DNA of 64,000 nt from Epithemia pelagica. Taxonomy: Eukaryota; Protista; Bacillariophyta. Where the stretch lies: positions 3,596,001-3,660,000 of the forward strand of contig OX337230.1 in NCBI GenBank assembly GCA_946965045.2, given 5' to 3'. The notes beneath the pieces were generated by a model. That model was not told where the DNA came from and did not search any database. It saw nothing but the letters and a program-made list of their open reading frames with translations. This document shows positions 2,641 through 44,305 of this stretch, piece by piece. Position 1 is the stretch's first letter, and each line of letters begins with the position of its first letter. Made by a program: the position numbers and the translations under genes.

Positions 2641-2777
2641 GACAATTTCGTGGCAGTCGAAATTGAAAGTGACCTGCTTTCTGCCCCTTTAAGAATACTT
2701 TCTGCCGTCTCGTAACTTTAGTACCGAGTCTTACGCACCAGAAAGTGCGTAGAGGCTGTTCCGGAACGCCGACGACC

Positions 2778-10653: not shown

Positions 10654-10773
10654 TTTCTTACATTTTTCAGTACTGTTAGTCCTCGCCTAGACTCCTAGGC
10701 CAGGCGCGTCGGTCGACGGCACCCCAGCGGGTCCGCGCGGCAGCGTTAAAATAGACTGTACCTTTTTTTTTTT

Positions 10774-10790
10774 TGGTTTTCGGATTCGCC
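10774..10790 (+). repeat. Right target-site duplication
   Basis: Identical to 2624-2640. Confidence 0.92.
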
Positions 10791-11153
10791 TCGCTCGTGG
10801 GGGAAGTCACGAGGCGAATGAAGGAAACGTCATCTTCGGAGCATTGACGTACGGTGAAGCGTTCCATGGAAGTCCGTGTCGACTGTGATTGGTGGAAAAA
10901 CGTCCCCGCAAACCACAAGAAAAAACCCATCAACGTCGTGCCGAGTGCCAACACGTTTGTGCACAATGCACTACCGTAAGGTAGGTATTGTATCGGATAT
11001 CGGCTCACATTCGAGATTGCAGTGTGTGGCATTGTCATTTGAGTCCAGAGAAGAGAAAAAAAAATACCATTCTCAATCTCTCTTCGTCTCTCTTCTCTCT
11101 TCACTCTCTCTCTCTGTCCAAGGCACAACATTGTATACCAAATCACTCGAGTC

Positions 11154-13100
11154 ATGAGGCCATTTCGATATCAACTCCTCGGCCTATGGATTGCTTCCTT
11201 GTGGTGGATGGTTCTCGAAACCACAACAACGACGACGACGGAGGCCTTTTCCATTCCCTTTGGCAAAGCGGGCGGACGAAAGCCCAACCAACCCGACAAG
11301 ATTGATTCGGGAGACGACGACAACTTTTCCATTGAACCAACGCGGCCATCGGAATGCCGACTCATTCTGTGTCAAATCACGGATGTGTACACCTTGGAAC
11401 ACTTGGCCTCCTTCAAGACCATGATTGCCGATACCAAGGCCCAGGCCGGCCCCGATACCACAGTCCTTTCCATGCTCACGGGGGACTTTTTGTCTCCCTA
11501 TCTCTTGTCGTCGGTGGACAAGGGAGCCGGCATGATGAATGCCTTGGCCAAACTGCCCTTGGACATTTTGACCTGGGGCAATCACGAGGCCGATATTGAC
11601 CATCGCTCGGTCGTGCGGCATGTGCGAAACTTTCCCGGCAAATGGCTCAATTCCAACATGCTGGACTACGAAGCCATGGATGCCCAACAGGAATATGATA
11701 TCATTCAACTCTGTTCCGCCGATGGCACGCATCGTCGCAAAGTAGGATTGTGTGCCGTGCTCAGCAACGATCCAGCTCTCTACTCGCATTTCAAGGCACC
11801 GGGTGCCTTTGGGGGAGCCACCGTGACGGATCCCTGGGAGGCCTTGGCCAAATACAAACACTTGTTGGAAGAGGAGCACGGTTGTGACTTGGTGGTGCCA
11901 CTCGAGCATCTCTATGTACCGGATGATCATAAAACGTGTCGAGACTTTGATTTTCCCCTCGTCTTGTCGGGCCACGACCATCATCGCGTCGATGAGGTGG
12001 TGGACGGAACACGGTTGCTCAAACCGGGCATGAATGCCGTGTATTCAACCGTGGTGGAAATCTCCTGGTCGGATCAAGAACAACGGAAACCTCGCATTCG
12101 AGCACGCTTTGTCCACTGCGCGGATTGGCAACCGGATCCAGTCTTGGCGGAGGAAAATGATCGAGCCTACGACGCACTCATTCCCCTCCGCAATACCGAG
12201 CTGTCGGCCGTTCCGGCCAGTTTTGAACCCTTATCGTCGGGCAATGCGCGAGGAGAAGTCTGTACCATGGGAAAATACATTTGCTCCTTGATTCGATCCG
12301 CCTTGAATGTGGATCGGGCCGACGACAGCAGCCCCGGTGTCGATGCCGTCTTGTTAATGGGTGGCAACATTCGAGGCAATGTTCAAGAATATCCTCCCGG
12401 ATCCTTTTTTTCGTTGGAAGCCTTGGAAGCGGAAACCAAATCCGATGAGGTGGTGGGAATTGTGCAAATGCCGGGTTGGTTGTTGGAACAAGGCGTCCGC
12501 GCCACCCATTCGGGAGATCCCATTCCGGGATGGATGCAATACGATGTGGGCGTCCAACAGGATGCGGCCACCAAACACGTGACGCATGTGGCCGGAGAGC
12601 CCTTGGAACGGAATCGCCTCTACCGCGTGGCCACCAAGATTAGTGATTTGACCAATGGCCAATGTGCTCCGTGGACCGACTATTACACGAAACATAAGCA
12701 CTGCTTGCCCCCGAATGGGGCCTACACCAATATCCAATCGGCCCTCATGACCTACTTTGCCAAGAATTTGTGGGAAGATTTGTGGGACAAAACGTCCGAA
12801 CTGATTGATGTCGATTGTGACGTAGACGACGATTGTGGCGCCGAGGCGCGCATGGAAGTGTTGGATAAAAATGGCCACGGCGTCGTGACCGTCGACGATG
12901 TGCAAGAAGCCTTGAGGGATTTGTTGGGAATCTCGGTCGACGAACGCGAGTCCACCTTGGCCGAAACGGTACATTCCTATGCCGACCAGACGGGAGATGG
13001 GACCGTGACACTCCAGGACATTGAATGCTTTTGCGAAGACATTCAACAAAAGATTATTCTCGAACAAAAACGGGAACCACGGCCCATGGCCCGAAAGTAA
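11154..13100 (+). CDS. 5'-nucleotidase/apyrase-family metallophosphoesterase with signal peptide and two C-terminal EF-hands (paralog A)
   Basis: Calcineurin-like motifs QITDVY, GDFLSP, GNHEAD and GHDH; nucleotidase C-domain GGNIRG; EF-hand loops DKNGHGVVTVDD and DQTGDGTVTLQD; hydrophobic N-terminus. Confidence 0.88.
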   Translation: MRPFRYQLLGLWIASLWWMVLETTTTTTTEAFSIPFGKAGGRKPNQPDKIDSGDDDNFSIEPTRPSECRLILCQITDVYTLEHLASFKTMIADTKAQAGPDTTVLSMLTGDFLSPYLLSSVDKGAGMMNALAKLPLDILTWGNHEADIDHRSVVRHVRNFPGKWLNSNMLDYEAMDAQQEYDIIQLCSADGTHRRKVGLCAVLSNDPALYSHFKAPGAFGGATVTDPWEALAKYKHLLEEEHGCDLVVPLEHLYVPDDHKTCRDFDFPLVLSGHDHHRVDEVVDGTRLLKPGMNAVYSTVVEISWSDQEQRKPRIRARFVHCADWQPDPVLAEENDRAYDALIPLRNTELSAVPASFEPLSSGNARGEVCTMGKYICSLIRSALNVDRADDSSPGVDAVLLMGGNIRGNVQEYPPGSFFSLEALEAETKSDEVVGIVQMPGWLLEQGVRATHSGDPIPGWMQYDVGVQQDAATKHVTHVAGEPLERNRLYRVATKISDLTNGQCAPWTDYYTKHKHCLPPNGAYTNIQSALMTYFAKNLWEDLWDKTSELIDVDCDVDDDCGAEARMEVLDKNGHGVVTVDDVQEALRDLLGISVDERESTLAETVHSYADQTGDGTVTLQDIECFCEDIQQKIILEQKREPRPMARK

Positions 13101-13114: not shown

Positions 13115-13180
<66 letters not shown>
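13115..13180. repeat. (CA)33 microsatellite
   Basis: Pure CA run 15 bp after the nucleotidase stop codon. Confidence 0.97.
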
Positions 13181-13639: not shown

Positions 13640-13975
13640 CTCCATTGGTCTAACCATGACTTGTAGTAGAGTGCTTGAACCAAACACTCTGGTGTTTCGT
13701 TAGCTTCGTTGTGTTCTATGGTTTATGGTAGGAGTACACTCTACACAAGAACTACCTCGCTGGGGACTAATACCTAGGTAGTAGTAGACTTATCATTGTT
13801 CGAGAATAGGGATGTGTCCAGGTGCAACTCATAATGCTTCAACACCGTGTGGTTGTGGTTTGGATCGTCCTTGTCGTCGTCGTTGTAGTAGTAGTTGTAG
13901 TGGGAACAAAAGAGTGGTACATCCAAGGATGCCACCATGGTATCGGACTGCCACCGGACCCGGTCTCCTCGTAGA
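13640..13975 (-). pseudogene. Diverged 3' fragment of a patatin gene plus downstream flank
   Basis: Minus strand reads DTMVASLDVPLFCSH..HYELHLDT, homologous to the C-terminus of 28804-30237. It has an 11-nt deletion (TACGCCGCCTG) relative to the intact gene. Confidence 0.8.
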
Positions 13976-14362
13976 CCACGTTTTCAGTCGGACTCATTGT
14001 TCAGTCACGAATTCACGCCACTCATTCTTCGGGTCATTCGTCACAACCTTTGTACGCGGTTGATACGACAGGTGAAGCAACCTTGATTTTGCACAATGGC
14101 AACCGAGCCGCTTCCTGAATATGGCAGAACAATCCCCAACAATTCCATCCTGAGTGGAATGTTGGTGTCGGTCTCACAGTCCCCCCAACACAGTGTCAGG
14201 AAGACCTGAGCCCGGTTGGACGAAAGAGGTGCGCAACAGTACTCTAGCAGAGCGGTTTTTTCTTGTCGAATGGGAACCAAAACGGTTTCCAAAAATCAGA
14301 CGTGTGCAATGAATCGTTTGGCATCTTCGCGTTCTTAATCTTGTCACACAAAAAGAGTAATC

Positions 14363-16069
14363 ATGAGGGACAGTTCAGCTTTTTATTTATCCTGCATCAA
14401 TGTTGCTGCTTTGGTAGTTTTCGTTTACCACATGTCACAGATCGAGCAACGTGAACAAGAAAGAGAACAACGTGAGCAAGAACGTGAACAAGAAAGAGAT
14501 GGCGAACGCAAGCTGTTGCTGCATTATTTCCCTTTTATGAGAAAGCCCTGGGACAAGTGTAAGATAAAGGTAGGTCTCGAGGCAAACGTTCCCAAGAGAC
14601 CTCGTAACATCAAGACCAAATCGGCCAAATTCTACTTCGAGAACATGAATGTTCCAGATGGACGTTTCAAATGCCTTGTAACGGGCAAAATTGGAGTTGG
14701 TGATGAAGTGAAACTTGCCCACATCATTCCTCGACGTTCACCCGACCAATTTTTCAAATACATTTGCCTGGATCCCAATGATCGTGACCAACCGAGGAAT
14801 ACCATGTTGCTTGCGGACAAACTAGAATCGGCATTCGATAATATGCAGATTTCGTTTTGTGAAACACCGGAATCAATCGAGTGTACTGAAGCGCGAGAGC
14901 GCCAGTACCGAGTCATGGTTTGGGATCAAAACATTCTGAATAAGAGTCTGTGGCCAGGTTCACAGTACACAGTTGAAGACTTTCAAGGTCATGTGTTCTC
15001 TTTTCCACCGGGTAAGGAGCCATTTACGCGCCTACTGAGTTGGCAGGCGCAAGATTCCTATGACAATGCTGTCAAGCTACGATGGGTATCTAAAAAAGAA
15101 TGTAAAAGACCACCTAAATTTGGAACCCCGGTGAGAGAAGTTTTCACAACACCGATTGATAATTGGATTTCCTATGCCCGTGGTGAAAGTCCACAAGCTG
15201 ACGAGAAGCAGTTTCGCGGTTGTCAAGAACGGCTTTTTCAAGATGAAGTCTCAACTAGCATCGTTTCAAGTAGTAATATTCCTTCTACCCTCTCCTTGAC
15301 GGACGAAGGAGAGGGGGTGTCCACTGACGACCTGGAAACAAAAAAAACCCACGACAAGGGTGCACAACGGAAACCAGACTCGTCTGTCGAGGAACTTGGC
15401 GTGCCATCACTTGGAAAGGATGAGTGCAGTGAATCAGTGCAGACGAACCGGACAAGCTCCAAACGGTCCATTACCAATTCAAAGCGGGGCCCTCGTCGAA
15501 TGCTGCATCATCCACCGCAAGACCTGGAGAACAACAAGCGCGTTCGCAAACTCGATAACGACCAGGAACTGGGGACCAATGGCATGGAGTCAATCCAACG
15601 GCCCGTGAGACCACTGTCATCCTCTCGAGCACTGACACGTCCCAGTGCTAGTACTACTCATCCCAGTCAGAAACATCCTGCGTCCAGCAATCAATCTGTC
15701 GTATCCAAAGGCTCGGTTCGTTCGTCGTCTTCGCCTTCTTCCCAACTGCCGTTTGGCAAAGCCGTCGGCAAACGCAGCACGGTCGACGCAGGAGATGAAC
15801 CCGTCCTGGTGGCGACTGCTCCTCGTAAGAGTAGAAGACCAGCAGCGTCATTGTCATCCAACACTCGAGGACAAGAACTGGTACCGCCCGTCCACCAAGC
15901 ACAGGAGCCAGACTTCGAGGAGACCCAGCCCGACCAAGACAACAACAACAATGTCCAGTCCAAACCTCGCACGAGCCGTACCCGGCGTCGCTTGAAATTT
16001 TTCCTTTGTGTATGCTTTTGCGTGGGTGTGGCTCTGACTCTGCTCGTGTTGGTGATTTTTTGGCCATGA
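14363..16069 (+). CDS. HNH-type (CR-HNH/HNH_2-like) endonuclease with N-terminal hydrophobic anchor, coiled coil and C-terminal TM (copy 1)
   Basis: CLVTG..KLAHIIP..RNTMLLADKLESAFD (H120, N146, E155); EQREQ coiled coil; C-terminal FFLCVCFCVGVALTLLVLVIFWP. Confidence 0.8.
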   Translation: MRDSSAFYLSCINVAALVVFVYHMSQIEQREQEREQREQEREQERDGERKLLLHYFPFMRKPWDKCKIKVGLEANVPKRPRNIKTKSAKFYFENMNVPDGRFKCLVTGKIGVGDEVKLAHIIPRRSPDQFFKYICLDPNDRDQPRNTMLLADKLESAFDNMQISFCETPESIECTEARERQYRVMVWDQNILNKSLWPGSQYTVEDFQGHVFSFPPGKEPFTRLLSWQAQDSYDNAVKLRWVSKKECKRPPKFGTPVREVFTTPIDNWISYARGESPQADEKQFRGCQERLFQDEVSTSIVSSSNIPSTLSLTDEGEGVSTDDLETKKTHDKGAQRKPDSSVEELGVPSLGKDECSESVQTNRTSSKRSITNSKRGPRRMLHHPPQDLENNKRVRKLDNDQELGTNGMESIQRPVRPLSSSRALTRPSASTTHPSQKHPASSNQSVVSKGSVRSSSSPSSQLPFGKAVGKRSTVDAGDEPVLVATAPRKSRRPAASLSSNTRGQELVPPVHQAQEPDFEETQPDQDNNNNVQSKPRTSRTRRRLKFFLCVCFCVGVALTLLVLVIFWP

Positions 16070-17367
16070 CGTGGAATTCCCGACCTGACAAGCTGGACGA
16101 ACACTCTATGTGCTGGAATGAATGAATCACAATTTGGGAGAAACACAACACCTGGATAAGAAGACTGCAATTAATGTGAAAGATGAAAAATTTGGTGCGA
16201 CGATCCAGGGGGGGGGGGGGGGTTGAGACTGATTGTTTATTGCCAAGTCATGCAGCCGATGTAGTCAATAGTGTTGAATAATCTTTATGTAATGCACATC
16301 GACCTTAGTTGGGAAAAATGTACCGCAGACTGTTTATAGGGGAAGTAATCTATTGATGTCTCGGCGAGATACCCAACCGAGCAAGTTGAGGAAAAAGCGG
16401 GTGCAGTCGTCATGACTGTTGCCAAAACTGCAGGTTCGACGACTGATTCGCGCAACGACGGACGACTTGTTCAACCAACGAAGAGCAATTTTGAGTTTTC
16501 TTGTTACTCTAGCACGATATTCGCCGATAGAGAGCAAGGCGACAAAGAGCGCCATTGTCGGACGATGGAATGGTATATTCCGTTGTGTGATCCTTCTGGC
16601 TCCTAGAGAAAGTGCAAGTTACCTACGGCGTATGGCTTTGCGGTTGTCGAAATTGCACTGTGGCTCCATCCAAACCAATAGCATTTTGCAACTCCAGAGA
16701 GCTTGCACCAAACACGGTATAGTGATTCGTTTGCTTTGTTGTAACATGGTACACTCTTCACAAGAACTACCTTGCTGGGGACTACCTGGTAGTAGACTCG
16801 TTGTTCCAGAATGGAAATGTGTCCATGTGCAACTCATAATGCTTCAACACCGTGTGGTTGTGGTTTGGATCGTCCTTGTCGTCGTCGTTGTAGTAGTAGT
16901 AGTAGTGGGAACAAAAGAGTGGTACATCCAAGGATGCCACCATGGTATCGGACTGCCACCGGACCCGGTCTCCTCGTAGACCACGTTTTCAGTCGGACTC
17001 ATTGTTCAGTCACGAATTCACGCCACTCATTCTTCGGGTCATTCGTCACAACCTTTGTACGCGGTTGATACGACAGGTGAAGCAACCTTGATTTTGCACA
17101 ATGGCAACCGAGCCGCTTCCTGAATATGGCAGAACAATCCCCAACAATTCCATCCTGAGTGGAATGTTGGTGTCGGTCTCACAGTCCCCCCAACACAGTG
17201 TCAGGAAGACTTGAGCCCGGTTGGACGAAAGAGGTGCGCAACAGTACTCTAGCAGAGCGGTTTTTTCTTGTCGAATGGGAACCAAAACGGTTTCCAAAAA
17301 TCAGACGTGTGCAATGAATCGTTTGGCATCTTCGCGTTCTTAATCTTGTCACACAAAAAGAGTAATC

Positions 17368-19074
17368 ATGAGGGACAGTTCAGCTTTTTATTTATCCTGC
17401 ATCAATGTTGCTGCTTTGGTAGTTTTCGTTTACCACATGTCACAGATCGAGCAACGTGAACAAGAAAGAGAACAACGTGAGCAAGAACGTGAACAAGAAA
17501 GAGATGGCGAACGCAAGCTGTTGCTGCATTATTTCCCTTTTATGAGAAAGCCCTGGGACAAGTGTAAGATAAAGGTAGGTCTCGAGGCAAACGTTCCCAA
17601 GAGACCTCGTAACATCAAGACCAAATCGGCCAAATTCTACTTCGAGAACATGAATGTTCCAGATGGACGTTTCAAATGCCTTGTAACGGGCAAAATTGGA
17701 GTTGGTGATGAAGTGAAACTTGCCCACATCATTCCTCGACGTTCACCCGACCAATTTTTCAAATACATTTGCCTGGATCCCAATGATCGTGACCAACCGA
17801 GGAATACCATGTTGCTTGCGGACAAACTAGAATCGGCATTCGATAATATGCAGATTTCGTTTTGTGAAACACCGGAATCAATCGAGTGTACTGAAGCGCG
17901 AGAGCGCCAGTACCGAGTCATGGTTTGGGATCAAAACATTCTGAATAAGAGTCTGTGGCCAGGTTCACAGTACACAGTTGAAGACTTTCAAGGTCATGTG
18001 TTCTCTTTTCCACCGGGTAAGGAGCCATTTACGCGCCTACTGAGTTGGCAGGCGCAAGATTCCTATGACAATGCTGTCAAGCTACGATGGGTATCTAAAA
18101 AAGAATGTAAAAGACCACCTAAATTTGGAACCCCGGTGAGAGAAGTTTTCACAACACCGATTGATAATTGGATTTCCTATGCCCGTGGTGAAAGTCCACA
18201 AGCTGACGAGAAGCAGTTTCGCGGTTGTCAAGAACGGCTTTTTCAAGATGAAGTCTCAACTAGCATCGTTTCAAGTAGTAATATTCCTTCTACCCTCTCC
18301 TTGACGGACGAAGGAGAGGGGGTGTCCACTGACGACCTGGAAACAAAAAAAACCCACGACAAGGGTGCACAACGGAAACCAGACTCGTCTGTCGAGGAAC
18401 TTGGCGTGCCATCACTTGGAAAGGATGAGTGCAGTGAATCAGTGCAGACGAACCGGACAAGCTCCAAACGGTCCATTACCAATTCAAAGCGGGGCCCTCG
18501 TCGAATGCTGCATCATCCACCGCAAGACCTGGAGAACAACAAGCGCGTTCGCAAACTCGATAACGACCAGGAACTGGGGACCAATGGCATGGAGTCAATC
18601 CAACGGCCCGTGAGACCACTGTCATCCTCTCGAGCACTGACACGTCCCAGTGCTAGTACTACTCATCCCAGTCAGAAACATCCTGCGTCCAGCAATCAAT
18701 CTGTCGTATCCAAAGGCTCGGTTCGTTCGTCGTCTTCGCCTTCTTCCCAACTGCCGTTTGGCAAAGCCGTCGGCAAACGCAGCACGGTCGACGCAGGAGA
18801 TGAACCCGTCCTGGTGGCGACTGCTCCTCGTAAGAGTAGAAGACCAGCAGCGTCATTGTCATCCAACACTCGAGGACAAGAACTGGTACCGCCCGTCCAC
18901 CAAGCACAGGAGCCAGACTTCGAGGAGACCCAGCCCGACCAAGACAACAACAACAATGTCCAGTCCAAACCTCGCACGAGCCGTACCCGGCGTCGCTTGA
19001 AATTTTTCCTTTGTGTATGCTTTTGCGTGGGTGTGGCTCTGACTCTGCTCGTGTTGGTGATTTTTTGGCCATGA
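17368..19074 (+). CDS. HNH-type endonuclease, copy 2
   Basis: Protein identical to copy 1. Confidence 0.8.
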   Translation: MRDSSAFYLSCINVAALVVFVYHMSQIEQREQEREQREQEREQERDGERKLLLHYFPFMRKPWDKCKIKVGLEANVPKRPRNIKTKSAKFYFENMNVPDGRFKCLVTGKIGVGDEVKLAHIIPRRSPDQFFKYICLDPNDRDQPRNTMLLADKLESAFDNMQISFCETPESIECTEARERQYRVMVWDQNILNKSLWPGSQYTVEDFQGHVFSFPPGKEPFTRLLSWQAQDSYDNAVKLRWVSKKECKRPPKFGTPVREVFTTPIDNWISYARGESPQADEKQFRGCQERLFQDEVSTSIVSSSNIPSTLSLTDEGEGVSTDDLETKKTHDKGAQRKPDSSVEELGVPSLGKDECSESVQTNRTSSKRSITNSKRGPRRMLHHPPQDLENNKRVRKLDNDQELGTNGMESIQRPVRPLSSSRALTRPSASTTHPSQKHPASSNQSVVSKGSVRSSSSPSSQLPFGKAVGKRSTVDAGDEPVLVATAPRKSRRPAASLSSNTRGQELVPPVHQAQEPDFEETQPDQDNNNNVQSKPRTSRTRRRLKFFLCVCFCVGVALTLLVLVIFWP

Positions 19075-20375
19075 CGTGGAATTCCCGACCTGACAAGCTG
19101 GACGAACACTCTATGTGCTGGAATGAATGAATCACAATTTGGGAGAAACACAACACCTGGATAAGAAGACTGCAATTAATGTGAAAGATGAAAAATTTGG
19201 TGCGACGATCCAGGGGGGGGGGGGGGGGGGTTGAGACTGATTGTTTATTGCCAAGTCATGCAGCCGATGTAGTCAATAGTGTTGAATAATCTTTATGTAA
19301 TGCACATCGACCTTAGTTGGGAAAAATGTACCGCAGACTGTTTATAGGGGAAGTAATCTATTGATGTCTCGGCGAGATACCCAACCGAGCAAGTTGAGGA
19401 AAAAGCGGGTGCAGTCGTCATGACTGTTGCCAAAACTGCAGGTTCGACGACTGATTCGCGCAACGACGGACGACTTGTTCAACCAACGAAGAGCAATTTT
19501 GAGTTTTCTTGTTACTCTAGCACGATATTCGCCGATAGAGAGCAAGGCGACAAAGAGCGCCATTGTCGGACGATGGAATGGTATATTCCGTTGTGTGATC
19601 CTTCTGGCTCCTAGAGAAAGTGCAAGTTACCTACGGCGTATGGCTTTGCGGTTGTCGAAATTGCACTGTGGCTCCATCCAAACCAATAGCATTTTGCAAC
19701 TCCAGAGAGCTTGCACCAAACACGGTATAGTGATTCGTTTGCTTTGTTGTAACATGGTACACTCTTCACAAGAACTACCTTGCTGGGGACTACCTGGTAG
19801 TAGACTCGTTGTTCCAGAATGGAAATGTGTCCATGTGCAACTCATAATGCTTCAACACCGTGTGGTTGTGGTTTGGATCGTCCTTGTCGTCGTCGTTGTA
19901 GTAGTAGTAGTAGTGGGAACAAAAGAGTGGTACATCCAAGGATGCCACCATGGTATCGGACTGCCACCGGACCCGGTCTCCTCGTAGACCACGTTTTCAG
20001 TCGGACTCATTGTTCAGTCACGAATTCACGCCACTCATTCTTCGGGTCATTCGTCACAACCTTTGTACGCGGTTGATACGACAGGTGAAGCAACCTTGAT
20101 TTTGCACAATGGCAACCGAGCCGCTTCCTGAATATGGCAGAACAATCCCCAACAATTCCATCCTGAGTGGAATGTTGGTGTCGGTCTCACAGTCCCCCCA
20201 ACACAGTGTCAGGAAGACTTGAGCCCGGTTGGACGAAAGAGGTGCGCAACAGTACTCTAGCAGAGCGGTTTTTTCTTGTCGAATGGGAACCAAAACGGTT
20301 TCCAAAAATCAGACGTGTGCAATGAATCGTTTGGCATCTTCGCGTTCTTAATCTTGTCACACAAAAAGAGTAATC

Positions 20376-22082
20376 ATGAGGGACAGTTCAGCTTTTTATT
20401 TATCCTGCATCAATGTTGCTGCTTTGGTAGTTTTCGTTTACCACATGTCACAGATCGAGCAACGTGAACAAGAAAGAGAACAACGTGAGCAAGAACGTGA
20501 ACAAGAAAGAGATGGCGAACGCAAGCTGTTGCTGCATTATTTCCCTTTTATGAGAAAGCCCTGGGACAAGTGTAAGATAAAGGTAGGTCTCGAGGCAAAC
20601 GTTCCCAAGAGACCTCGTAACATCAAGACCAAATCGGCCAAATTCTACTTCGAGAACATGAATGTTCCAGATGGACGTTTCAAATGCCTTGTAACGGGCA
20701 AAATTGGAGTTGGTGATGAAGTGAAACTTGCCCACATCATTCCTCGACGTTCACCCGACCAATTTTTCAAATACATTTGCCTGGATCCCAATGATCGTGA
20801 CCAACCGAGGAATACCATGTTGCTTGCGGACAAACTAGAATCGGCATTCGATAATATGCAGATTTCGTTTTGTGAAACACCGGAATCAATCGAGTGTACT
20901 GAAGCGCGAGAGCGCCAGTACCGAGTCATGGTTTGGGATCAAAACATTCTGAATAAGAGTCTGTGGCCAGGTTCACAGTACACAGTTGAAGACTTTCAAG
21001 GTCATGTGTTCTCTTTTCCACCGGGTAAGGAGCCATTTACGCGCCTACTGAGTTGGCAGGCGCAAGATTCCTATGACAATGCTGTCAAGCTACGATGGGT
21101 ATCTAAAAAAGAATGTAAAAGACCACCTAAATTTGGAACCCCGGTGAGAGAAGTTTTCACAACACCGATTGATAATTGGATTTCCTATGCCCGTGGTGAA
21201 AGTCCACAAGCTGACGAGAAGCAGTTTCGCGGTTGTCAAGAACGGCTTTTTCAAGATGAAGTCTCAACTAGCATCGTTTCAAGTAGTAATATTCCTTCTA
21301 CCCTCTCCTTGACGGACGAAGGAGAGGGGGTGTCCACTGACGACCTGGAAACAAAAAAAACCCACGACAAGGGTGCACAACGGAAACCAGACTCGTCTGT
21401 CGAGGAACTTGGCGTGCCATCACTTGGAAAGGATGAGTGCAGTGAATCAGTGCAGACGAACCGGACAAGCTCCAAACGGTCCATTACCAATTCAAAGCGG
21501 GGCCCTCGTCGAATGCTGCATCATCCACCGCAAGACCTGGAGAACAACAAGCGCGTTCGCAAACTCGATAACGACCAGGAACTGGGGACCAATGGCATGG
21601 AGTCAATCCAACGGCCCGTGAGACCACTGTCATCCTCTCGAGCACTGACACGTCCCAGTGCTAGTACTACTCATCCCAGTCAGAAACATCCTGCGTCCAG
21701 CAATCAATCTGTCGTATCCAAAGGCTCGGTTCGTTCGTCGTCTTCGCCTTCTTCCCAACTGCCGTTTGGCAAAGCCGTCGGCAAACGCAGCACGGTCGAC
21801 GCAGGAGATGAACCCGTCCTGGTGGCGACTGCTCCTCGTAAGAGTAGAAGACCAGCAGCGTCATTGTCATCCAACACTCGAGGACAAGAACTGGTACCGC
21901 CCGTCCACCAAGCACAGGAGCCAGACTTCGAGGAGACCCAGCCCGACCAAGACAACAACAACAATGTCCAGTCCAAACCTCGCACGAGCCGTACCCGGCG
22001 TCGCTTGAAATTTTTCCTTTGTGTATGCTTTTGCGTGGGTGTGGCTCTGACTCTGCTCGTGTTGGTGATTTTTTGGCCATGA
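20376..22082 (+). CDS. HNH-type endonuclease, copy 3
   Basis: Protein identical to copy 1. Confidence 0.8.
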   Translation: MRDSSAFYLSCINVAALVVFVYHMSQIEQREQEREQREQEREQERDGERKLLLHYFPFMRKPWDKCKIKVGLEANVPKRPRNIKTKSAKFYFENMNVPDGRFKCLVTGKIGVGDEVKLAHIIPRRSPDQFFKYICLDPNDRDQPRNTMLLADKLESAFDNMQISFCETPESIECTEARERQYRVMVWDQNILNKSLWPGSQYTVEDFQGHVFSFPPGKEPFTRLLSWQAQDSYDNAVKLRWVSKKECKRPPKFGTPVREVFTTPIDNWISYARGESPQADEKQFRGCQERLFQDEVSTSIVSSSNIPSTLSLTDEGEGVSTDDLETKKTHDKGAQRKPDSSVEELGVPSLGKDECSESVQTNRTSSKRSITNSKRGPRRMLHHPPQDLENNKRVRKLDNDQELGTNGMESIQRPVRPLSSSRALTRPSASTTHPSQKHPASSNQSVVSKGSVRSSSSPSSQLPFGKAVGKRSTVDAGDEPVLVATAPRKSRRPAASLSSNTRGQELVPPVHQAQEPDFEETQPDQDNNNNVQSKPRTSRTRRRLKFFLCVCFCVGVALTLLVLVIFWP

Positions 22083-23381
22083 CGTGGAATTCCCGACCTG
22101 ACAAGCTGGACGAACACTCTATGTGCTGGAATGAATGAATCACAATTTGGGAGAAACACAACACCTGGATAAGAAGACTGCAATTAATGTGAAAGATGAA
22201 AAATTTGGTGCGACGATCCAGGGGGGGGGGGGGGGGTTGAGACTGATTGTTTATTGCCAAGTCATGCAGCCGATGTAGTCAATAGTGTTGAATAATCTTT
22301 ATGTAATGCACATCGACCTTAGTTGGGAAAAATGTACCGCAGACTGTTTATAGGGGAAGTAATCTATTGATGTCTCGGCGAGATACCCAACCGAGCAAGT
22401 TGAGGAAAAAGCGGGTGCAGTCATCATGACTGTTGCCAAAACTGCAGGTTCGACGACTGATTCGCGCAACGACGGACGACTTGTTCAACCAACGAAGAGC
22501 AATTTTGAGTTTTCTTGTTACTCTAGCACGATATTCGCCGATAGAGAGCAAGGCGACAAAGAGCGCCATTGTCGGACGATGGAATGGTATATTCCGTTGT
22601 GTGATCCTTCTGGCTCCTAGAGAAAGTGCAAGTTACCTACGGCGTATGGCTTTGCGGTTGTCGAAATTGCACTGTGGCTCCATCCAAACCAATAGCATTT
22701 TGCAACTCCAGAGAGCTTGCACCAAACACGGTATAGTGATTCGTTTGCTTTGTTGTAACATGGTACACTCTTCACAAGAACTACCTTGCTGGGGACTACC
22801 TGGTAGTAGACTCGTTGTTCCAGAATGGAAATGTGTCCATGTGCAACTCATAATGCTTCAACACCGTGTGGTTGTGGTTTGGATCGTCCTTGTCGTCGTC
22901 GTTGTAGTAGTAGTAGTAGTGGGAACAAAAGAGTGGTACATCCAAGGATGCCACCATGGTATCGGACTGCCACCGGACCCGGTCTCCTCGTAGACCACGT
23001 TTTCAGTCGGACTCATTGTTCAGTCACGAATTCACGCCACTCATTCTTCGGGTCATTCGTCACAACCTTTGTACGCGGTTGATACGACAGGTGAAGCAAC
23101 CTTGATTTTGCACAATGGCAACCGAGCCGCTTCCTGAATATGGCAGAACAATCCCCAACAATTCCATCCTGAGTGGAATGTTGGTGTCGGTCTCACAGTC
23201 CCCCCAACACAGTGTCAGGAAGACTTGAGCCCGGTTGGACGAAAGAGGTGCGCAACAGTACTCTAGCAGAGCGGTTTTTTCTTGTCGAATGGGAACCAAA
23301 ACGGTTTCCAAAAATCAGACGTGTGCAATGAATCGTTTGGCATCTTCGCGTTCTTAATCTTGTCACACAAAAAGAGTAATC

Positions 23382-25088
23382 ATGAGGGACAGTTCAGCTT
23401 TTTATTTATCCTGCATCAATGTTGCTGCTTTGGTAGTTTTCGTTTACCACATGTCACAGATCGAGCAACGTGAACAAGAAAGAGAACAACGTGAGCAAGA
23501 ACGTGAACAAGAAAGAGATGGCGAACGCAAGCTGTTGCTGCATTATTTCCCTTTTATGAGAAAGCCCTGGGACAAGTGTAAGATAAAGGTAGGTCTCGAG
23601 GCAAACGTTCCCAAGAGACCTCGTAACATCAAGACCAAATCGGCCAAATTCTACTTCGAGAACATGAATGTTCCAGATGGACGTTTCAAATGCCTTGTAA
23701 CGGGCAAAATTGGAGTTGGTGATGAAGTGAAACTTGCCCACATCATTCCTCGACGTTCACCCGACCAATTTTTCAAATACATTTGCCTGGATCCCAATGA
23801 TCGTGACCAACCGAGGAATACCATGTTGCTTGCGGACAAACTAGAATTGGCATTCGATAATATGCAGATTTCGTTTTGTGAAACACCGGAATCAATCGAG
23901 TGTACTGAAGCGCGAGAGCGCCAGTACCGAGTCATGGTTTGGGATCAAAACATTCTGAATAAGAGTCTGTGGCCAGGTTCACAGTACACAGTTGAAGACT
24001 TTCAAGGTCATGTGTTCTCTTTTCCACCGGGTAAGGAGCCATTTACGCGCCTACTGAGTTGGCAGGCGCAAGATTCCTATGACAATGCTGTCAAGCTACG
24101 ATGGGTATCTAAAAAAGAATGTAAAAGACCACCTAAATTTGGAACCCCGGTGAGAGAAGTTTTCACAACACCGATTGATAATTGGATTTCCTATGCCCGT
24201 GGTGAAAGTCCACAAGCTGACGAGAAGCAGTTTCGCGGTTGTCAAGAACGGCTTTTTCAAGATGAAGTCTCAACTAGCATCGTTTCAAGTAGTAATATTC
24301 CTTCTACCCTCTCCTTGACGGACGAAGGAGAGGGGGTGTCCACTGACGACCTGGAAACAAAAAAAAACCACGACAAGGGTGCACAACGGAAACCAGACTC
24401 GTCTGTCGAGGAACTTGGCGTGCCATCACTTGGAAAGGATGAGTGCAGTGAATCAGTGCAGACGAACCGGACAAGCTCCAAACGGTCCATTACCAATTCA
24501 AAGCGGGGCCCTCGTCGAATGCTGCATCATCCACCGCAAGACCTGGAGAACAACAAGCGCGTTCGCAAACTCGATAACGACCAGGAACTGGGGACCAATG
24601 GCATGGAGTCAATCCAACGGCCCGTGAGACCACTGTCATCCTCTCGAGCACTGACACGTCCCAGTGCTAGTACTACTCATCCCAGTCAGAAACATCCTGC
24701 GTCCAGCAATCAATCTGTCGTATCCAAAGGCTCGGTTCGTTCGTCGTCTTCGCCTTCTTCCCAACTGCCGTTTGGCAAAGCCGTCGGCAAACGCAGCACG
24801 GTCGACGCAGGAGATGAACCCGTCCTGGTGGCGACTGCTCCTCGTAAGAGTAGAAGACCAGCAGCGTCATTGTCATCCAACACTCGAGGACAAGAACTGG
24901 TACCGCCCGTCCACCAAGCACAGGAGCCAGACTTCGAGGAGACCCAGCCCGACCAAGACAACAACAACAATGTCCAGTCCAAACCTCGCACGAGCCGTAC
25001 CCGGCGTCGCTTGAAATTTTTCCTTTGTGTATGCTTTTGCGTGGGTGTGGCTCTGACTCTGCTCGTGTTGGTGATTTTTTGGCCATGA
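23382..25088 (+). CDS. HNH-type endonuclease, copy 4 (S156L, T329N)
   Basis: Two nonsynonymous SNPs relative to copy 1. Confidence 0.8.
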   Translation: MRDSSAFYLSCINVAALVVFVYHMSQIEQREQEREQREQEREQERDGERKLLLHYFPFMRKPWDKCKIKVGLEANVPKRPRNIKTKSAKFYFENMNVPDGRFKCLVTGKIGVGDEVKLAHIIPRRSPDQFFKYICLDPNDRDQPRNTMLLADKLELAFDNMQISFCETPESIECTEARERQYRVMVWDQNILNKSLWPGSQYTVEDFQGHVFSFPPGKEPFTRLLSWQAQDSYDNAVKLRWVSKKECKRPPKFGTPVREVFTTPIDNWISYARGESPQADEKQFRGCQERLFQDEVSTSIVSSSNIPSTLSLTDEGEGVSTDDLETKKNHDKGAQRKPDSSVEELGVPSLGKDECSESVQTNRTSSKRSITNSKRGPRRMLHHPPQDLENNKRVRKLDNDQELGTNGMESIQRPVRPLSSSRALTRPSASTTHPSQKHPASSNQSVVSKGSVRSSSSPSSQLPFGKAVGKRSTVDAGDEPVLVATAPRKSRRPAASLSSNTRGQELVPPVHQAQEPDFEETQPDQDNNNNVQSKPRTSRTRRRLKFFLCVCFCVGVALTLLVLVIFWP

Positions 25089-26386
25089 CGTGGAATTCCC
25101 GACCTGACAAGCTGGACGAACACTCTATGTGCTGGAATGAATGAATCACAATTTGGGAGAAACACAACACCTGGATAAGAAGACTGCAATTAATGTGAAA
25201 GATGAAAAATTTGGTGCGACGATCCAGGGGGGGGGGGGGGGTTGAGACTGATTGTTTATTGCCAAGTCATGCGGCCGATGTAGTCAATAGTGTTGAATAA
25301 TCTTTATGTAATGCACATCGACCTTAGTTGGGAAAAATGTACCGCAGACTGTTTATAGGGGAAGTAATCTATTGATGTCTCGGCGAGATACCCAACCGAG
25401 CAAGTTGAGGAAAAAGCGGGTGCAGTCGTCATGACTGTTGCCAAAACTGCAGGTTCGACGACTGATTCGCGCAACGACGGACGACTTGTTCAACCAACGA
25501 AGAGCAATTTTGAGTTTTCTTGTTACTCTAGCACGATATTCGCCGATAGAGAGCAAGGCGACAAAGAGCGCCATTGTCGGACGATGGAATGGTATATTCC
25601 GTTGTGTGATCCTTCTGGCTCCTAGAGAAAGTGCAAGTTACCTACGGCGTATGGCTTTGCGGTTGTCGAAATTGCACTGTGGCTCCATCCAAACCAATAG
25701 CATTTTGCAACTCCAGAGAGCTTGCACCAAACACAGTATAGTGATTCGTTTGCTTTGTTGTAACATGGTACACTCTTCACAAGAACTACCTTGCTGGGGA
25801 CTACCTGGTAGTAGACTCGTTGTTCCAGAATGGAAATGTGTCCATGTGCAACTCATAATGCTTCAACACCGTGTGGTTGTGGTTTGGATCGTCCTTGTCG
25901 TCGTCGTTGTAGTAGTAGTAGTAGTGGGAACAAAAGAGTGGTACATCCAAGGATGCCACCATGGTATCGGACTGCCACCGGACCCGGTCTCCTCGTAGAC
26001 CACGTTTTCAGTCGGACTCATTGTTCAGTCACGAATTCACGCCACTCATTCTTCGGGTCATTCGTCACAACCTTTGTACGCGGTTGATACGACAGGTGAA
26101 GCAACCTTGATTTTGCACAATGGCAACCGAGCCGCTTCCTGAATATGGCAGAACAATCCCCAACAATTCCATCCTGAGTGGAATGTTGGTGTCGGTCTCA
26201 CAGTCCCCCCAACACAGTGTCAGGAAGACTTGAGCCCGGTTGGACGAAAGAGGTGCGCAACAGTACTCTAGCAGAGCGGTTTTTTCTTGTCGAATGGGAA
26301 CCAAAACGGTTTCCAAAAATCAGACGTGTGCAATGAATCGTTTGGCATCTTCGCGTTCTTAATCTTGTCACACAAAAAGAGTAATC

Positions 26387-28093
26387 ATGAGGGACAGTTC
26401 AGCTTTTTATTTATCCTGCATCAATGTTGCTGCTTTGGTAGTTTTCGTTTACCACATGTCACAGATCGAGCAACGTGAACAAGAAAGAGAACAACGTGAG
26501 CAAGAACGTGAACAAGAAAGAGATGGCGAACGCAAGCTGTTGCTGCATTATTTCCCTTTTATGAGAAAGCCCTGGGACAAGTGTAAGATAAAGGTAGGTC
26601 TCGAGGCAAACGTTCCCAAGAGACCTCGTAACATCAAGACCAAATCGGCCAAATTCTACTTCGAGAACATGAATGTTCCAGATGGACGTTTCAAATGCCT
26701 TGTAACGGGCAAAATTGGAGTTGGTGATGAAGTGAAACTTGCCCACATCATTCCTCGACGTTCACCCGACCAATTTTTCAAATACATTTGCCTGGATCCC
26801 AATGATCGTGACCAACCGAGGAATACCATGTTGCTTGCGGACAAACTAGAATCGGCATTCGATAATATGCAGATTTCGTTTTGTGAAACACCGGAATCAA
26901 TCGAGTGTACTGAAGCGCGAGAGCGCCAGTACCGAGTCATGGTTTGGGATCAAAACATTCTGAATAAGAGTCTGTGGCCAGGTTCACAGTACACAGTTGA
27001 AGACTTTCAAGGTCATGTGTTCTCTTTTCCACCGGGTAAGGAGCCATTTACGCGCCTACTGAGTTGGCAGGCGCAAGATTCCTATGACAATGCTGTCAAG
27101 CTACGATGGGTATCTAAAAAAGAATGTAAAAGACCACCTAAATTTGGAACCCCGGTGAGAGAAGTTTTCACAACACCGATTGATAATTGGATTTCCTATG
27201 CCCGTGGTGAAAGTCCACAAGCTGACGAGAAGCAGTTTCGCGGTTGTCAAGAACGGCTTTTTCAAGGTGAAGTCTCAACTAGCATCGTTTCAAGTAGTAA
27301 TATTCCTTCTACCCTCTCCTTGACGGACGAAGGAGAGGGGGTGTCCACTGACGACCTGGAAACAAAAAAAACCCACGACAAGGGTGCACAACGGAAACCA
27401 GACTCGTCTGTCGAGGAACTTGGCGTGCCATCACTTGGAAAGGATGAGTGCAGTGAATCAGTGCAGACGAACCGGACAAGCTCCAAACGGTCCATTACCA
27501 ATTCAAAGCGGGGCCCTCGTCGAATGCTGCATCATCCACCGCAAGACCTGGAGAACAACAAGCGCGTTCGCAAACTCGATAACGACCAGGAACTGGGGAC
27601 CAATGGCATGGAGTCAATCCAACGGCCCGTGAGACCACTGTCATCCTCTCGAGCACTGACACGTCCCAGTGCTAGTACTACTCATCCCAGTCAGAAACAT
27701 CCTGCGTCCAGCAATCAATCTGTCGTATCCAAAGGCTCGGTTCGTTCGTCGTCTTCGCCTTCTTCCCAACTGCCGTTTGGCAAAGCCGTCGGCAAACGCA
27801 GCACGGTCGACGCAGGAGATGAACCCGTCCTGGTGGCGACTGCTCCTCGTAAGAGTAGAAGACCAGCAGCGTCATTGTCATCCAACACTCGAGGACAAGA
27901 ACTGGTACCGCCCGTCCACCAAGCACAGGAGCCAGACTTCGAGGAGACCCAGCCCGACCAAGACAACAACAACAATGTCCAGTCCAAACCTCGCACGAGC
28001 CGTACCCGGCGTCGCTTGAAATTTTTCCTTTGTGTATGCTTTTGCGTGGGTGTGGCTCTGACTCTGCTCGTGTTGGTGATTTTTTGGCCATGA
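26387..28093 (+). CDS. HNH-type endonuclease, copy 5 (D294G)
   Basis: One nonsynonymous SNP relative to copy 1. Confidence 0.8.
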   Translation: MRDSSAFYLSCINVAALVVFVYHMSQIEQREQEREQREQEREQERDGERKLLLHYFPFMRKPWDKCKIKVGLEANVPKRPRNIKTKSAKFYFENMNVPDGRFKCLVTGKIGVGDEVKLAHIIPRRSPDQFFKYICLDPNDRDQPRNTMLLADKLESAFDNMQISFCETPESIECTEARERQYRVMVWDQNILNKSLWPGSQYTVEDFQGHVFSFPPGKEPFTRLLSWQAQDSYDNAVKLRWVSKKECKRPPKFGTPVREVFTTPIDNWISYARGESPQADEKQFRGCQERLFQGEVSTSIVSSSNIPSTLSLTDEGEGVSTDDLETKKTHDKGAQRKPDSSVEELGVPSLGKDECSESVQTNRTSSKRSITNSKRGPRRMLHHPPQDLENNKRVRKLDNDQELGTNGMESIQRPVRPLSSSRALTRPSASTTHPSQKHPASSNQSVVSKGSVRSSSSPSSQLPFGKAVGKRSTVDAGDEPVLVATAPRKSRRPAASLSSNTRGQELVPPVHQAQEPDFEETQPDQDNNNNVQSKPRTSRTRRRLKFFLCVCFCVGVALTLLVLVIFWP

Positions 28094-28803
28094 CGTGGAA
28101 TTCCCGACCTGACAAGCTGGACGAACACTCTATGTGCTGGAATGAATGAATCACAATTTGGGAGAAACACAACACCTGGATAAGAAGACTGCAATTAATG
28201 TGAAAGATGAAAAATTTGGTGCGACGATCCAGGGGGGGGGGGGGTTGAGACTGATTGTTTATTGCCAAGTCATGCAGCCGATGTAGTCAATAGTGTTGAA
28301 TAATCTTTATGTAATGCACATCGACCTTAGTTGGGAAAAATGTACCGCAGACTGTTTATAGGGGAAGTAATCTATTGATGTCTCGGCGAGATACCCAACC
28401 GAGCAAGTTGAGGAAAAAGCGGGTGCAGTCGTCATGACTGTTGCCAAAACTGCAGGTTCGACGACTGATTCGCGCAACGACGGACGACTTGTTCAACCAA
28501 CGAAGAGCAATTTTGAGTTTTCTTGTTACTCTAGCACGATATTCGCCGATAGAGAGCAAGGCGACAAAGAGCGCCATTGTCGGACGATGGAATGGTATAT
28601 TCCGTTGTGTGATCCTTCTGGCTCCTAGAGAAAGTGCAAGTTACCTACGGCGTATGGCTTTGCGGTTGTCGAAATTGCACTGTGGCTCCATCCAAACCAA
28701 TAGCATTTTGCAACTCCAGAGAGCTTGCACCAAACACGGTATAGTGATTCGTTTGCTTTGTTGTAACATGGTACACTCTTCACAAGAACTACCTTGCTGG
28801 GGA

Positions 28804-30237
28804 CTACCTGGTAGTAGACTCGTTGTTCCAGAATGGAAATGTGTCCATGTGCAACTCATAATGCTCCAACAACGTCATATTGTTGTGAATTGGATCGTCG
28901 TCGTCGTCGTACAAGTAGAAGTGGGAACAAAAGAGGGGTACATCCAACGATGCCACCATGGTATCGTACGCCGCCTGGACTGCCACCGGACCCGGTTTCA
29001 TGTTCCACGGTCGTACCGGCGGCAAATTTTGAATGGACAAGGACAGAACTTGGCGGCACGGTGGTTGTGTGCGATGATTGCCATTGCCATTATGGTCCCC
29101 AACAATGAGTCTGGAAACCTCCAAGGGTCCCGGTGGTGATGGTTGGTGAGACGACCGAAACGAACCCACCTTGAGATTGACGACACGCTCCAATTTGTTC
29201 GTCTTGTTGTTGCCCTTGTTGCGGCGCGTGGCAGAAAAGGACTCGAGGAGGGCTGGCAAGGCTAGGATACCGGACCGGTCTTGAACGCCACCATCAATCA
29301 AGTAACGAGTCCTGTACGAATGACTGCCATCATTCTGTTCGTCATCATGACTTGCAAAAGAAGTGGGACGCCAACGAACGGGTTGAAACAAGAGCGGAAA
29401 GGTCGCGGACGCCCGAGCGGCTCTTGCCATGTTGCCCGTCGTCAACACCCGAGTCGTACGACTGCGCACACAAAAGGCTGTCACCGCCACGGGAACCAAG
29501 GCATCTTGAAGCTGCAACGAAGATGTGGTGTTTTCAAATTGTCGTTGTTGTTGATCCTGTTCTTGGAGAAGGAACTGGTCCATGAGTTGTTCAAACCACT
29601 TTCCTCGAAAGAGACCTCCCCATCCGGGAAAATCTGCATACTTGTCCAACGTTACGGTAGAACAAAAGTCGGCGGCTTTGCGGGGAGCAATACCGGCCGC
29701 TGTCAAGACAGCCGCCATGGCACCGGCCGAAGCTCCGACCAAACCGTGGACCAACTCCAACAACGACGGTGGTGGATCCAAGGATGACGACTGTTGTTGT
29801 TGTTGTGACAAGTGTTCCTCCCAGGCGGCCAAGACACCAAAATAGCCATAAAATCCAAAGAATGCCGGTGCCATGGCCAAGGAAAATCCATCCTCGTGCT
29901 GCAAAAAGGATCGGAGAGTCACATTCGACAAGGACACAGTGACATTGGTACCACCCTTCGTGGAGTTGTTGTTCCATGCGGCGCCTTGTGGTGCCAGAAT
30001 GTGCGGATGCTTCGTCCAAACGTTGTGGAATGCCGGATCCTGCCATTGCTGTACATTTTGGTCTTGATGATGGTTTCCACGCTTGGTAGGAAACAACAAC
30101 AACAACAAGTGTTGTGTCGTACTTCTGCTACTACTTCTTCCTTTGGCAAACGTCGATCCTCGGTGGACAAACAAAAAGCTGCTGCTACTGCACCCAAATA
30201 AAACCAACCAGATCAACACAAGCGCAAATGGCTTCAT
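28804..30237 (-). CDS. Patatin-like phospholipase with signal peptide
   Basis: GASAG nucleophile, DGG motif, ARAARASATFPLLFQPV, glycine-rich APAFFGFYGYFG and a hydrophobic N-terminus. Confidence 0.88.
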   Translation of the reverse strand: MKPFALVLIWLVLFGCSSSSFLFVHRGSTFAKGRSSSRSTTQHLLLLLFPTKRGNHHQDQNVQQWQDPAFHNVWTKHPHILAPQGAAWNNNSTKGGTNVTVSLSNVTLRSFLQHEDGFSLAMAPAFFGFYGYFGVLAAWEEHLSQQQQQSSSLDPPPSLLELVHGLVGASAGAMAAVLTAAGIAPRKAADFCSTVTLDKYADFPGWGGLFRGKWFEQLMDQFLLQEQDQQQRQFENTTSSLQLQDALVPVAVTAFCVRSRTTRVLTTGNMARAARASATFPLLFQPVRWRPTSFASHDDEQNDGSHSYRTRYLIDGGVQDRSGILALPALLESFSATRRNKGNNKTNKLERVVNLKVGSFRSSHQPSPPGPLEVSRLIVGDHNGNGNHRTQPPCRQVLSLSIQNLPPVRPWNMKPGPVAVQAAYDTMVASLDVPLFCSHFYLYDDDDDPIHNNMTLLEHYELHMDTFPFWNNESTTR

Positions 30238-30739
30238 GCTACAACTGGTTGAGCATCACACTGCATCTAGTACCTAGATCGATCGACCTTTGCTCGAATA
30301 GAGTACAGAAGCGTATTGTAGTCGTTTTGTCGTCATGGTCGACCCAGATGAGGCGAAGAAGTGCGTCAGACGAACCGTGATTCAAATGGGGCATAGAGCA
30401 GTCCTGTATAGAGCTGCTAGAGCGAGTACCTTCTCCTGCAGGGACACCCGGCAAAGTCGACAAGAAACGACAAAAGCGACAAAGTGCTAACACGGCTAAG
30501 ACACGAGATTTCGAAAGTGAATTATCATCTATTATGCATAGCGATGTTCACATACCGTAGTAGCACACTTTCTTCGTCTTACTCCTACCTACTCCTACTC
30601 CTACCTACCTAGAGGTCTTACCTATGTGCTATATGTTCTGTGCCAATAGTCTACTAGGAGTAGGAGTATGTGGTATTTTGCGCGTTCTAATGAGAAATTC
30701 GCAATAAGAGCGACCCAAAGCGACCGAATATGTCAGAAA

Positions 30740-30851
30740 CACGACATTGTCACGACATTCTCACGACATTTAATGTAATTGTCACGACATAGACACGACA
30801 AGTACACGACATAGACACGACAAACACGACAAACACAACATTTTCACGACG
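30740..30851. repeat. Array of CACGACA motifs, mostly at 11-bp spacing
   Basis: Perfect copies at 30740, 30751, 30762, 30783, 30794, 30805, 30816 and 30825; variants at 30834 and 30845. Confidence 0.9.
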
Positions 30852-43900: not shown

Positions 43901-44305
43901 AAGACTGTGGACTTTCCTTGTGTACACGAGGGTTCATGAAAAAGTCCTTGTGAAGTTCTTGATGATATTGGTGAAAAGTTGACCGCGTGTCATCGTAGTC
44001 AGCTGTAAAGCCCGCCTGATTGGTCATCAAATTCTCCTGTCTCGCCGACATATCTAATAGATAACTACTCCTCTAAACAGTCTGCAGTACATTTTTCTAA
44101 CTAAGGTCGATGCGCATTACAAAAGTTCAATGTTTTCAGCACTACCAATGACACCAGCTGCAAGGCTTGGCAACAAACAGTCAGTCTCGGATCGTCACAC
44201 CAAATTTTTCATCTTTCACATTAGTTGCAGCCTTCTTATCCAATTGTGTTGTGTTTCTCCCAAACTGGCATCGTCAGCGCGATTCTCCATCGGTGTTATG
44301 AAAAC

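Follow-up and report, generated by a model that had tools for sequence, protein, structure and literature searches.

A young tandem array of a chimeric HNH_2-family gene differs in copy number between haplotypes of the diatom Epithemia pelagica

Gene arrays that vary in copy number through unequal crossing-over include yeast CUP1, human DEFA1A3 and Drosophila Bar. Benthic diatoms, for example Seminavis robusta, are rich in tandem duplicates (PMC7335047). The HNH_2 family, in the classification of His-Me finger proteins, has members both among restriction enzymes, such as AlwI and HphI, and among the 'CR-HNH' effectors of the Crinkler type (PMC5714182), which form group 38 (PMC5714182) and include PvCRN16 and PvCRN23 (PMC8044898). 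The stretch of DNA considered here, termed the window, comprises 64,000 nucleotides from the diatom Epithemia pelagica (GenBank assembly GCA_946965045.2, contig OX337230.1, positions 3,596,001 to 3,660,000 of the forward strand) and contains a tandem array of five units, each carrying one gene for an HNH_2 protein of 568 amino acids (aa).

A preliminary description, made from the letters of the window without database searches, interpreted the array as a very recent dosage amplification of a single nuclease gene, of the kind seen for genes in genetic conflict. The explanation that best accounts for the whole is instead a young and real array generated by non-allelic homologous recombination, with a chimeric HNH_2 gene as its cargo, a copy number that varies between haplotypes and a status that is nearly neutral or mildly selected for dosage; a probability of roughly 0.62 is attached to this reading.

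Structure and founding of the array

The array extends over positions 13822-28865 of the window on the plus strand and consists of five units arranged head-to-tail, each 3003-3008 bp in length, as delimited by Tandem Repeats Finder, the list of open reading frames (ORFs) and a repeat finder. The distances between the starts of successive ORFs in units 1-5 are 3005, 3008, 3006 and 3005 bp, and one unit compared by BLAST with the window finds homology across 13734-28980, or ~5.07 units. The boundary between units is marked by a 17-mer, GTGCAACTCATAATGCT, present in six copies in the window (at 13822, 16827, 19835, 22841, 25846 and 28849) against a chance expectation of none. Each unit opens with this 17-nt crossover identity (13822-16826, 16827-19834, 19835-22840, 22841-25845 and 25846-28848), and the sixth copy (28849-28865) closes the array; 13822 and 28865, the limits given originally, are the first base of the first copy and the last base of the sixth. 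Five units of ~3.0 kb, each with an intact 568-aa ORF, are therefore recovered, as first described, by the ORF list, the repeat finders, BLAST and the copies of the 17-mer alike.

All five ORFs lie on the plus strand and are intact: copy 1, which serves as the reference sequence, at 14363..16069, and copies 2 to 5 at 17368..19074, 20376..22082, 23382..25088 and 26387..28093. Copies 2 and 3 encode the same protein as copy 1, and the sole coding differences are S156L and T329N in copy 4 and D294G in copy 5, the three changes that had been reported. Pairs of units differ by 0-6 substitutions per 3 kb, in keeping with the proposal that the amplification is very recent, and the eight variable positions found when the diverged left edge and a poly-G tract are left out are singletons in every case. 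The poly-G tract, ~13-18 nt long and situated ~120 bp 3' of each ORF (e.g. 16190-16209 and 19213-19230), varies in length between units and between assemblies, which represents either sequencing error or true hypervariability; such differences were set aside as a unit marker, the ~18-nt tract being unreliable. Other than the 568-aa ORF, no ORF in the unit exceeds 137 aa, all of them being short, of low complexity or antisense; there is no second conserved ORF, and an Rfam scan of the unit gave no match.

The joints between units record how the array arose. An alignment of both flanks with the four internal joints shows all four joints to be one and the same hybrid, with sequence of the right-flank type before the 17-mer and of the left-flank type after it. 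The right-flank sequence in the joints corresponds to the 3' end and downstream region of a patatin-like phospholipase gene (28804..30237, minus strand; 477 aa), and the 3' end of this intact gene (28770..29050, minus strand) was the right crossover partner that seeded the array. The left partner (13690..13960, minus strand) is a diverged fragment of a patatin gene 3' end, comprising ~55 C-terminal codons and the stop; translation of the minus strand across ~13690-13960 yields a recognisable copy of the patatin C-terminus. These two 3'-end copies are ~85% identical and enclose a segment of 2.8 kb. Because the joints are the same hybrid of two diverged patatin 3' ends, the duplication was founded by one unequal crossover within the 17 nt of identity between the patatin repeats and, because all joints are identical, later changes in copy number were exchanges between whole 3-kb units. 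The array was made, in other words, by unequal crossing-over or non-allelic homologous recombination.

A transposon-mediated origin was also considered, and rejected, as the patatin repeats explain the joints and a DNA search of the whole genome (60.5 Mb in 23 contigs) returned only the three source loci and a duplicate of the patatin end on C6. This duplicate, on another chromosome, is a third copy of the patatin 3' end together with ~0.6 kb of the downstream region (L018:3288-4449, equal to G000:C6:3747287-3748448); it is 80% identical, and no intact patatin gene is found there.

Copy number, haplotypes and the assembly path

An independent assembly, ENA ERZ21939226, was found by exact-protein look-ups and holds eight array units in total on the relevant contigs, ctg1205l, ctg1286l and ctg1177l. 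The first of these, 193 kb in length, spans the locus, where the metallophosphoesterase and patatin genes seen in the window enclose three copies. On ctg1286l (483 kb) the left flank is different and lacks a retroelement that the window has, and the contig breaks off within the array once 4.03 units have been covered; ctg1177l runs into the array from the right and includes ~1 unit. Copy number by assembly is hence 3 on ctg1205l, at least 4.03 on ctg1286l and 5 in the window. Two assemblies, independent of each other, thus contain the amplification, and within the same sample one haplotype has fewer copies than the other (3 versus at least 4). The variability anticipated between strains is found within one sample, as 3 versus at least 4.03 units.

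The left flank of the window is 100% identical to ctg1205l over 9371 bp, with 0 mismatches, and 94.6% identical to ctg1286l. On the right, window positions 26285-40233 and 34310-55484 match ctg1177l with 0 mismatches, and ctg1205l differs there. As the left flank represents one haplotype and the right flank the other, the path of the window switches haplotype across the array. This switch, along with the break of one independent contig inside the array and the disagreement between assemblies over the lengths of the ~18-nt poly-G tracts, could be taken to indicate that the repeats are the product of misassembly around one real copy. Such an artefact is made extremely improbable by the second assembly, which spans three copies with both unique flanks and has at least four on another contig, by units that have distinct private single-nucleotide polymorphisms (SNPs), the first and last of them with haplotype-specific variants, and by the clear biological origin of the hybrid joint.

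The five copies in the window probably result from the phase-switched path, and may not be a real haplotype count. Unit 1 has a base specific to ctg1205l, whereas unit 5 has D294G like the last unit of ctg1177l, to which gene copy 5 is identical; among the variants peculiar to the last unit of ctg1205l is the synonymous T473T. The four private SNPs of unit 4 are absent from all units of the independent assembly and an exact-protein look-up of the unit-4 variant in ERZ21939226 found no match, leaving this unit attested by one assembly. Provided that neither assembly is in error here, at least seven units would be present on the second haplotype, namely four from the left, one each of the unit-3 and unit-4 types, and the last unit.

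Divergence between the haplotypes is ~5% left of ~13.2 kb and ~3.5% right of ~36.4 kb, yet 0.08% between these points (window ~13190-36370), where the array lies. Since the block containing the array is only 0.08% diverged, copy number has changed faster than point substitutions build up, within a time equivalent to about one substitution per kilobase.

The block of low divergence at ~13190-36370 is itself either a recent tract of identity by descent or a tract of loss of heterozygosity. Diatom homologues often recombine in mitosis (bioRxiv 10.1101/2020.11.08.373134). A (CA)33 microsatellite (window 13115-13180), immediately to the left of the array and roughly where high heterozygosity stops, is length-polymorphic between haplotigs. 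For Yju2, a conserved splicing factor encoded nearby, protein identity between the two alleles is only 94% (L010:1234-2262 versus the ctg1205l allele), and the haplotypes, or possibly sub-genomes, are unusually divergent. Among named organisms, this Yju2 protein is matched best by those of the diatoms Epithemia (55%) and Cylindrotheca (47%).

Other differences between the haplotypes involve neighbouring elements. A non-long-terminal-repeat (non-LTR) retroelement with an RVT_1 domain (window 2745-10653; ORF1 2745-4907, ORF2 4891-10653) is found in the window and on ctg1205l and is absent from ctg1286l. A second copy, 99.95% identical, is located near the HNH_2 paralogue described below on ctg1205l only (L013:14648-21179), and the element looks young and insertion-polymorphic. 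A gene of 769 aa (window 41591-43900) is intact in the window and on ctg1177l and is split into ORFs of 434 aa and 301 aa on the other haplotig (L013:11585-13890). The window also contains a Copia-type (RVT_2) retroelement ORF of 1545 aa at 56188-60825.

Sources of the arrayed gene and its predicted product

Apart from the five arrayed copies, the HNH_2 family is represented in the genome only by a paralogue at a distance of 30 kb, one distant member on C1 and a fragment on C6. The diverged paralogue (44306..45484, minus strand; 392 aa) has the same N-terminal hydrophobic segment and domain as the arrayed gene and an expanded EQREQ repeat, and ends where the captured tail of the arrayed gene starts. 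Residues 1-267 of the arrayed protein and ~370 bp upstream are homologous to the paralogue (76-83% identity in DNA, 60% in protein). Residues 350-566 match, at 76% protein and 86% DNA identity, the C-terminal part of an otherwise unrelated 566-aa protein encoded 2.35 Mb away (C3:1.256 Mb). In copy 1 this captured 3' segment lies at 15431..16083 on the plus strand, with 86% DNA identity to G000:C3:1256321-1256979, and supplies residues 350-566, including a predicted transmembrane anchor at 547-565.

The stop codon of the paralogue falls at the equivalent of arrayed residue 258, and its downstream flank (44040..44267, minus strand) matches positions 2397-2639 of the array unit, 3' of the 568-aa ORF; hence ~970 bp were inserted into the ancestral gene. 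The inserted DNA took the place of the stop and brought in a disordered Ser/Arg-rich tail together with the transmembrane segment 547-565. The arrayed gene is, on these alignments, a young, lineage-restricted chimera, in which the promoter, N-terminal hydrophobic segment, charged EQREQ stretch and HNH_2 domain came from the local paralogue and the tail and anchor from the distant gene. The notion of a 'single nuclease gene' is consequently apt in that there is one gene per unit, but it overlooks that this gene is a recent chimera of two.

The repeat expanded in the paralogue is an in-frame coding repeat (EQREQEREQ...DGERKLLLQ, in several copies; window 44900-45400), of which the arrayed gene has the motif once. 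The left neighbour of the array, a metallophosphoesterase/5'-nucleotidase-like gene with EF-hands (11154..13100, plus strand), has its own paralogue at 45961-48225. As this stands beside the HNH_2 paralogue, the gene pair probably stems from an older segmental duplication (synonymous divergence, dS, ~0.23). Comparing the alleles of the HNH_2 paralogue says nothing about selection, since both haplotypes have the same coding sequence and the same ~0.5 kb to each side of it.

The sole Pfam domain in the 568-aa protein is HNH_2 (PF13391), matched by residues 104-165 at 35.4 bits against a cut-off of 21, and 44 of the 48 aligned relatives also match it. A word-based protein search, with either the whole protein or residues 60-270, returned, apart from the query, no more than the paralogue and the tail donor, and close relatives found by word-based searching number only two among 5.8 billion proteins. 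An exhaustive profile search, however, gave 394 cluster representatives at E <= 1e-3, of which 99 reach E <= 1e-10. The profile matches cover residues ~76-264, delimiting an extended nuclease domain of ~190 aa (14588..15154 on the plus strand in copy 1) that is wider than the Pfam model. Within the 48-member alignment, the conserved positions are C104 (48/48), H120 (40/48), R145 (43/48), N146 (46/48), E155 (38/48, with K in 8/48) and D159 (37/48), in addition to several positions in the C-terminal extension.

An AlphaFold model computed from the family alignment has a mean predicted local distance difference test score (pLDDT) of 88. Compared with 48,161 PDB representatives, this predicted fold best matches the nuclease domains of TagI (Z 9.2, 115 residues) and VcaM4I (Z 8.8, 129 residues), followed by McrA, the HNH domains of Cas9 and the Cap5 protein of cyclic-oligonucleotide-based anti-phage signalling systems (CBASS), with the lower matches nearly all HNH nucleases. 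The top structural match from the ESM Atlas is a eukaryotic cluster of stand-alone HNH_2 proteins, most commonly from the phylum Chlorophyta, with a template modelling score (TM) of 0.72; further matches include an oomycete cluster combining Crinkler and HNH_2 (TM 0.48) and bacterial HNH_2 proteins fused to reader domains of the ScoMcrA type. Sequence searches of the PDB, whether with the single sequence or with the profile, gave no meaningful match, and Foldseek against the PDB gave weak HNH matches only. The Pfam match and the predicted fold bear out the original assignment of the product as HNH-type. It would be a metal-dependent DNA nuclease of the H-N-E variant of the motif that typifies the family (H120, N146, E155, D159).

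Hydropathy scanning detects two hydrophobic segments, an N-terminal one at residues 6-24 and a C-terminal one at 547-565. Scanned in the same way, 12 of 148 relatives have an N-terminal hydrophobic segment and 0 of 148 a C-terminal one; the predicted double anchoring is therefore specific to the young arrayed gene. Both ends may fix the protein to an endomembrane, leaving most of it exposed to the cytosol or nucleoplasm.

Selection, significance and comparison with known systems

A number of points weigh against the favoured reading, of a young recombination-generated array with a chimeric HNH_2 cargo. The canonical last His of the motif is replaced by Glu155, E being the family consensus at this position, and we know of no member of this H-N-E HNH_2 subfamily that has been assayed. 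The membrane topology is a prediction from a simple hydropathy scan, and the copy counts per haplotype come from assemblies. Of the 8 units in ERZ21939226, none shares the SNPs private to units 3 and 4 of the window, and protein look-ups place the exact arrayed protein on record only in genome assemblies. Finally, the ratio of nonsynonymous to synonymous divergence (dN/dS) between the arrayed gene and the paralogue is 0.85 for the nuclease domain and 0.63 for the tail, values that fit the relaxed constraint of a dispensable young gene as well as they fit fast adaptive change, such that activity is not assured.

A dN/dS near 1 might equally be expected were the ORF an accident of segmental duplication, encoding no working nuclease, and the array mere genomic noise. 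The unit is indeed a patchwork from at least three loci, and protein look-ups reveal no transcript records for the arrayed protein. However, C104, H120, R145, N146, E155, D159, P220 and P256 are shared by the arrayed gene and the paralogue despite a dS of ~0.23; the captured tail is in frame and stops just past the membrane anchor, each unit includes a paralogue-like upstream region, and a relative is found in a marine protist transcriptome (an MMETSP member). A neutral array of a non-functional proto-gene is consequently regarded as unlikely, if deserving of real weight.

The coding variants also bear on whether the gene has been amplified through conflict. Over all assembled units there are three nonsynonymous variants and one synonymous variant, T473T, and a ratio of 3:1 carries no selection signal because about three quarters of random changes are nonsynonymous. 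That all coding changes alter the protein is correct for the units of the window, but fails as a signal given the synonymous fourth variant from the other assembly. Similarly, S156L does adjoin the putative catalytic E155, which occupies the last-HNH position, but family members may have K, D, Q, E, T, S, N or I at position 156; positions 294 and 329 fall in a non-conserved linker.

The closest relative from elsewhere, 51-52% identical, is encoded in another diatom-like assembly, ERZ25042306, as two HNH_2 copies inverted around a Copia-type retroelement (L017:3302-3883, minus strand, and 10232-10813, plus strand). Neither a patatin nor a metallophosphoesterase gene neighbours these copies, and functional links between the nuclease and either the metallophosphoesterase or the patatin were accordingly rejected.

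Adaptive amplification through conflict, in which higher dosage of a nuclease with a defence, effector, allorecognition or drive function was selected, would accord with the roles of HNH_2 domains as effector heads of oomycete Crinklers and nuclease modules of bacterial restriction enzymes (PMC5714182, PMC8044898), although the arrayed protein has neither a Crinkler header nor a sensor or reader domain recognised by Pfam. The gene is lineage-restricted and fast-evolving, as indicated by the dN/dS of 0.85 and the mere two close relatives, and polymorphic in copy number; yet the variants display no nonsynonymous excess, with S156L at a variable position, and ORFs of such an age are expected to be intact even without selection. 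The neighbouring patatin-like phospholipase belongs to another common type of immune effector, but this adjacency is not kept in the related diatom, and the unit itself lacks a partner gene. Unequal crossing-over between pre-existing repeats suffices to explain the array fully. The inference from amplification to genetic conflict has no direct support, and conflict-driven amplification is distinctly unlikely. Most probably, the gene was amplified because of the way the locus is built, with repeats on both sides, and the array is a nearly neutral or mildly dosage-selected copy-number variant rather than a response in an arms race.

A bolder version, judged decidedly improbable, has a newborn, doubly anchored H-N-E nuclease acting in diatom self-defence or programmed cell death, with copy number a selected dosage polymorphism; viral or own DNA might, for instance, be destroyed at the nuclear membrane or that of the endoplasmic reticulum. 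Were this true, the locus would provide the first functional handle on a eukaryote-wide HNH_2 subfamily of ~400 sequence clusters.

Under the favoured reading, this one locus displays the origin of a chimeric gene, the precise crossover from which an array started and a change in copy number outpacing point mutation between two diatom haplotypes, with the caveat for the assembly that a phase switch runs through the array. It also points to an uncharacterised eukaryotic H-N-E branch of the HNH_2 nucleases. Present evidence reveals no new defence or drive system, but rather a tidy and ordinary case of known kinds, a copy-number-variable array and a gene of the HNH_2 family.

Poison-antidote and meiotic-drive loci have a second component, whereas the array unit has no partner ORF, its others being at most 137 aa, and no Rfam match. 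The Crinkler CR-HNH (DBE-type) effectors of oomycetes and other eukaryotes resemble the diatom protein in possessing a eukaryotic HNH_2 head, and their genes are often tandem-duplicated. They have, however, an N-terminal header domain (PF20147) that Pfam does not find in the diatom protein, which instead starts with a hydrophobic segment followed by the EQREQ repeat. In predicted structure, the latter is nearer to the stand-alone algal HNH_2 proteins than to the Crinkler cluster, and its host is a free-living alga.

The predicted diatom fold superposes on the nuclease domains of TagI and VcaM4I over ~115-130 residues, with the catalytic His and Asn common to both. The structural match is limited to these domains (chain residues 193-311 and 163-309, respectively), and the restriction enzymes have in addition a reader domain for modified bases, of which Pfam finds none in the diatom protein. 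The latter further differs in having Glu for the last His, as across the eukaryotic subgroup, a eukaryotic host and hydrophobic anchors at both termini.

The closest parallel is with copy-number-variable tandem arrays formed by unequal crossing-over. Unlike these, the diatom array is not known to be linked to a phenotype or selective agent. It shares with them the head-to-tail arrangement of units, a single founding joint between flanking direct repeats, later unequal exchange at the level of the unit and a copy number that differs between haplotypes; its distinguishing features are a cargo that is a young chimeric gene and founding repeats that are fragments of the 3' end of a neighbouring gene rather than transposons.

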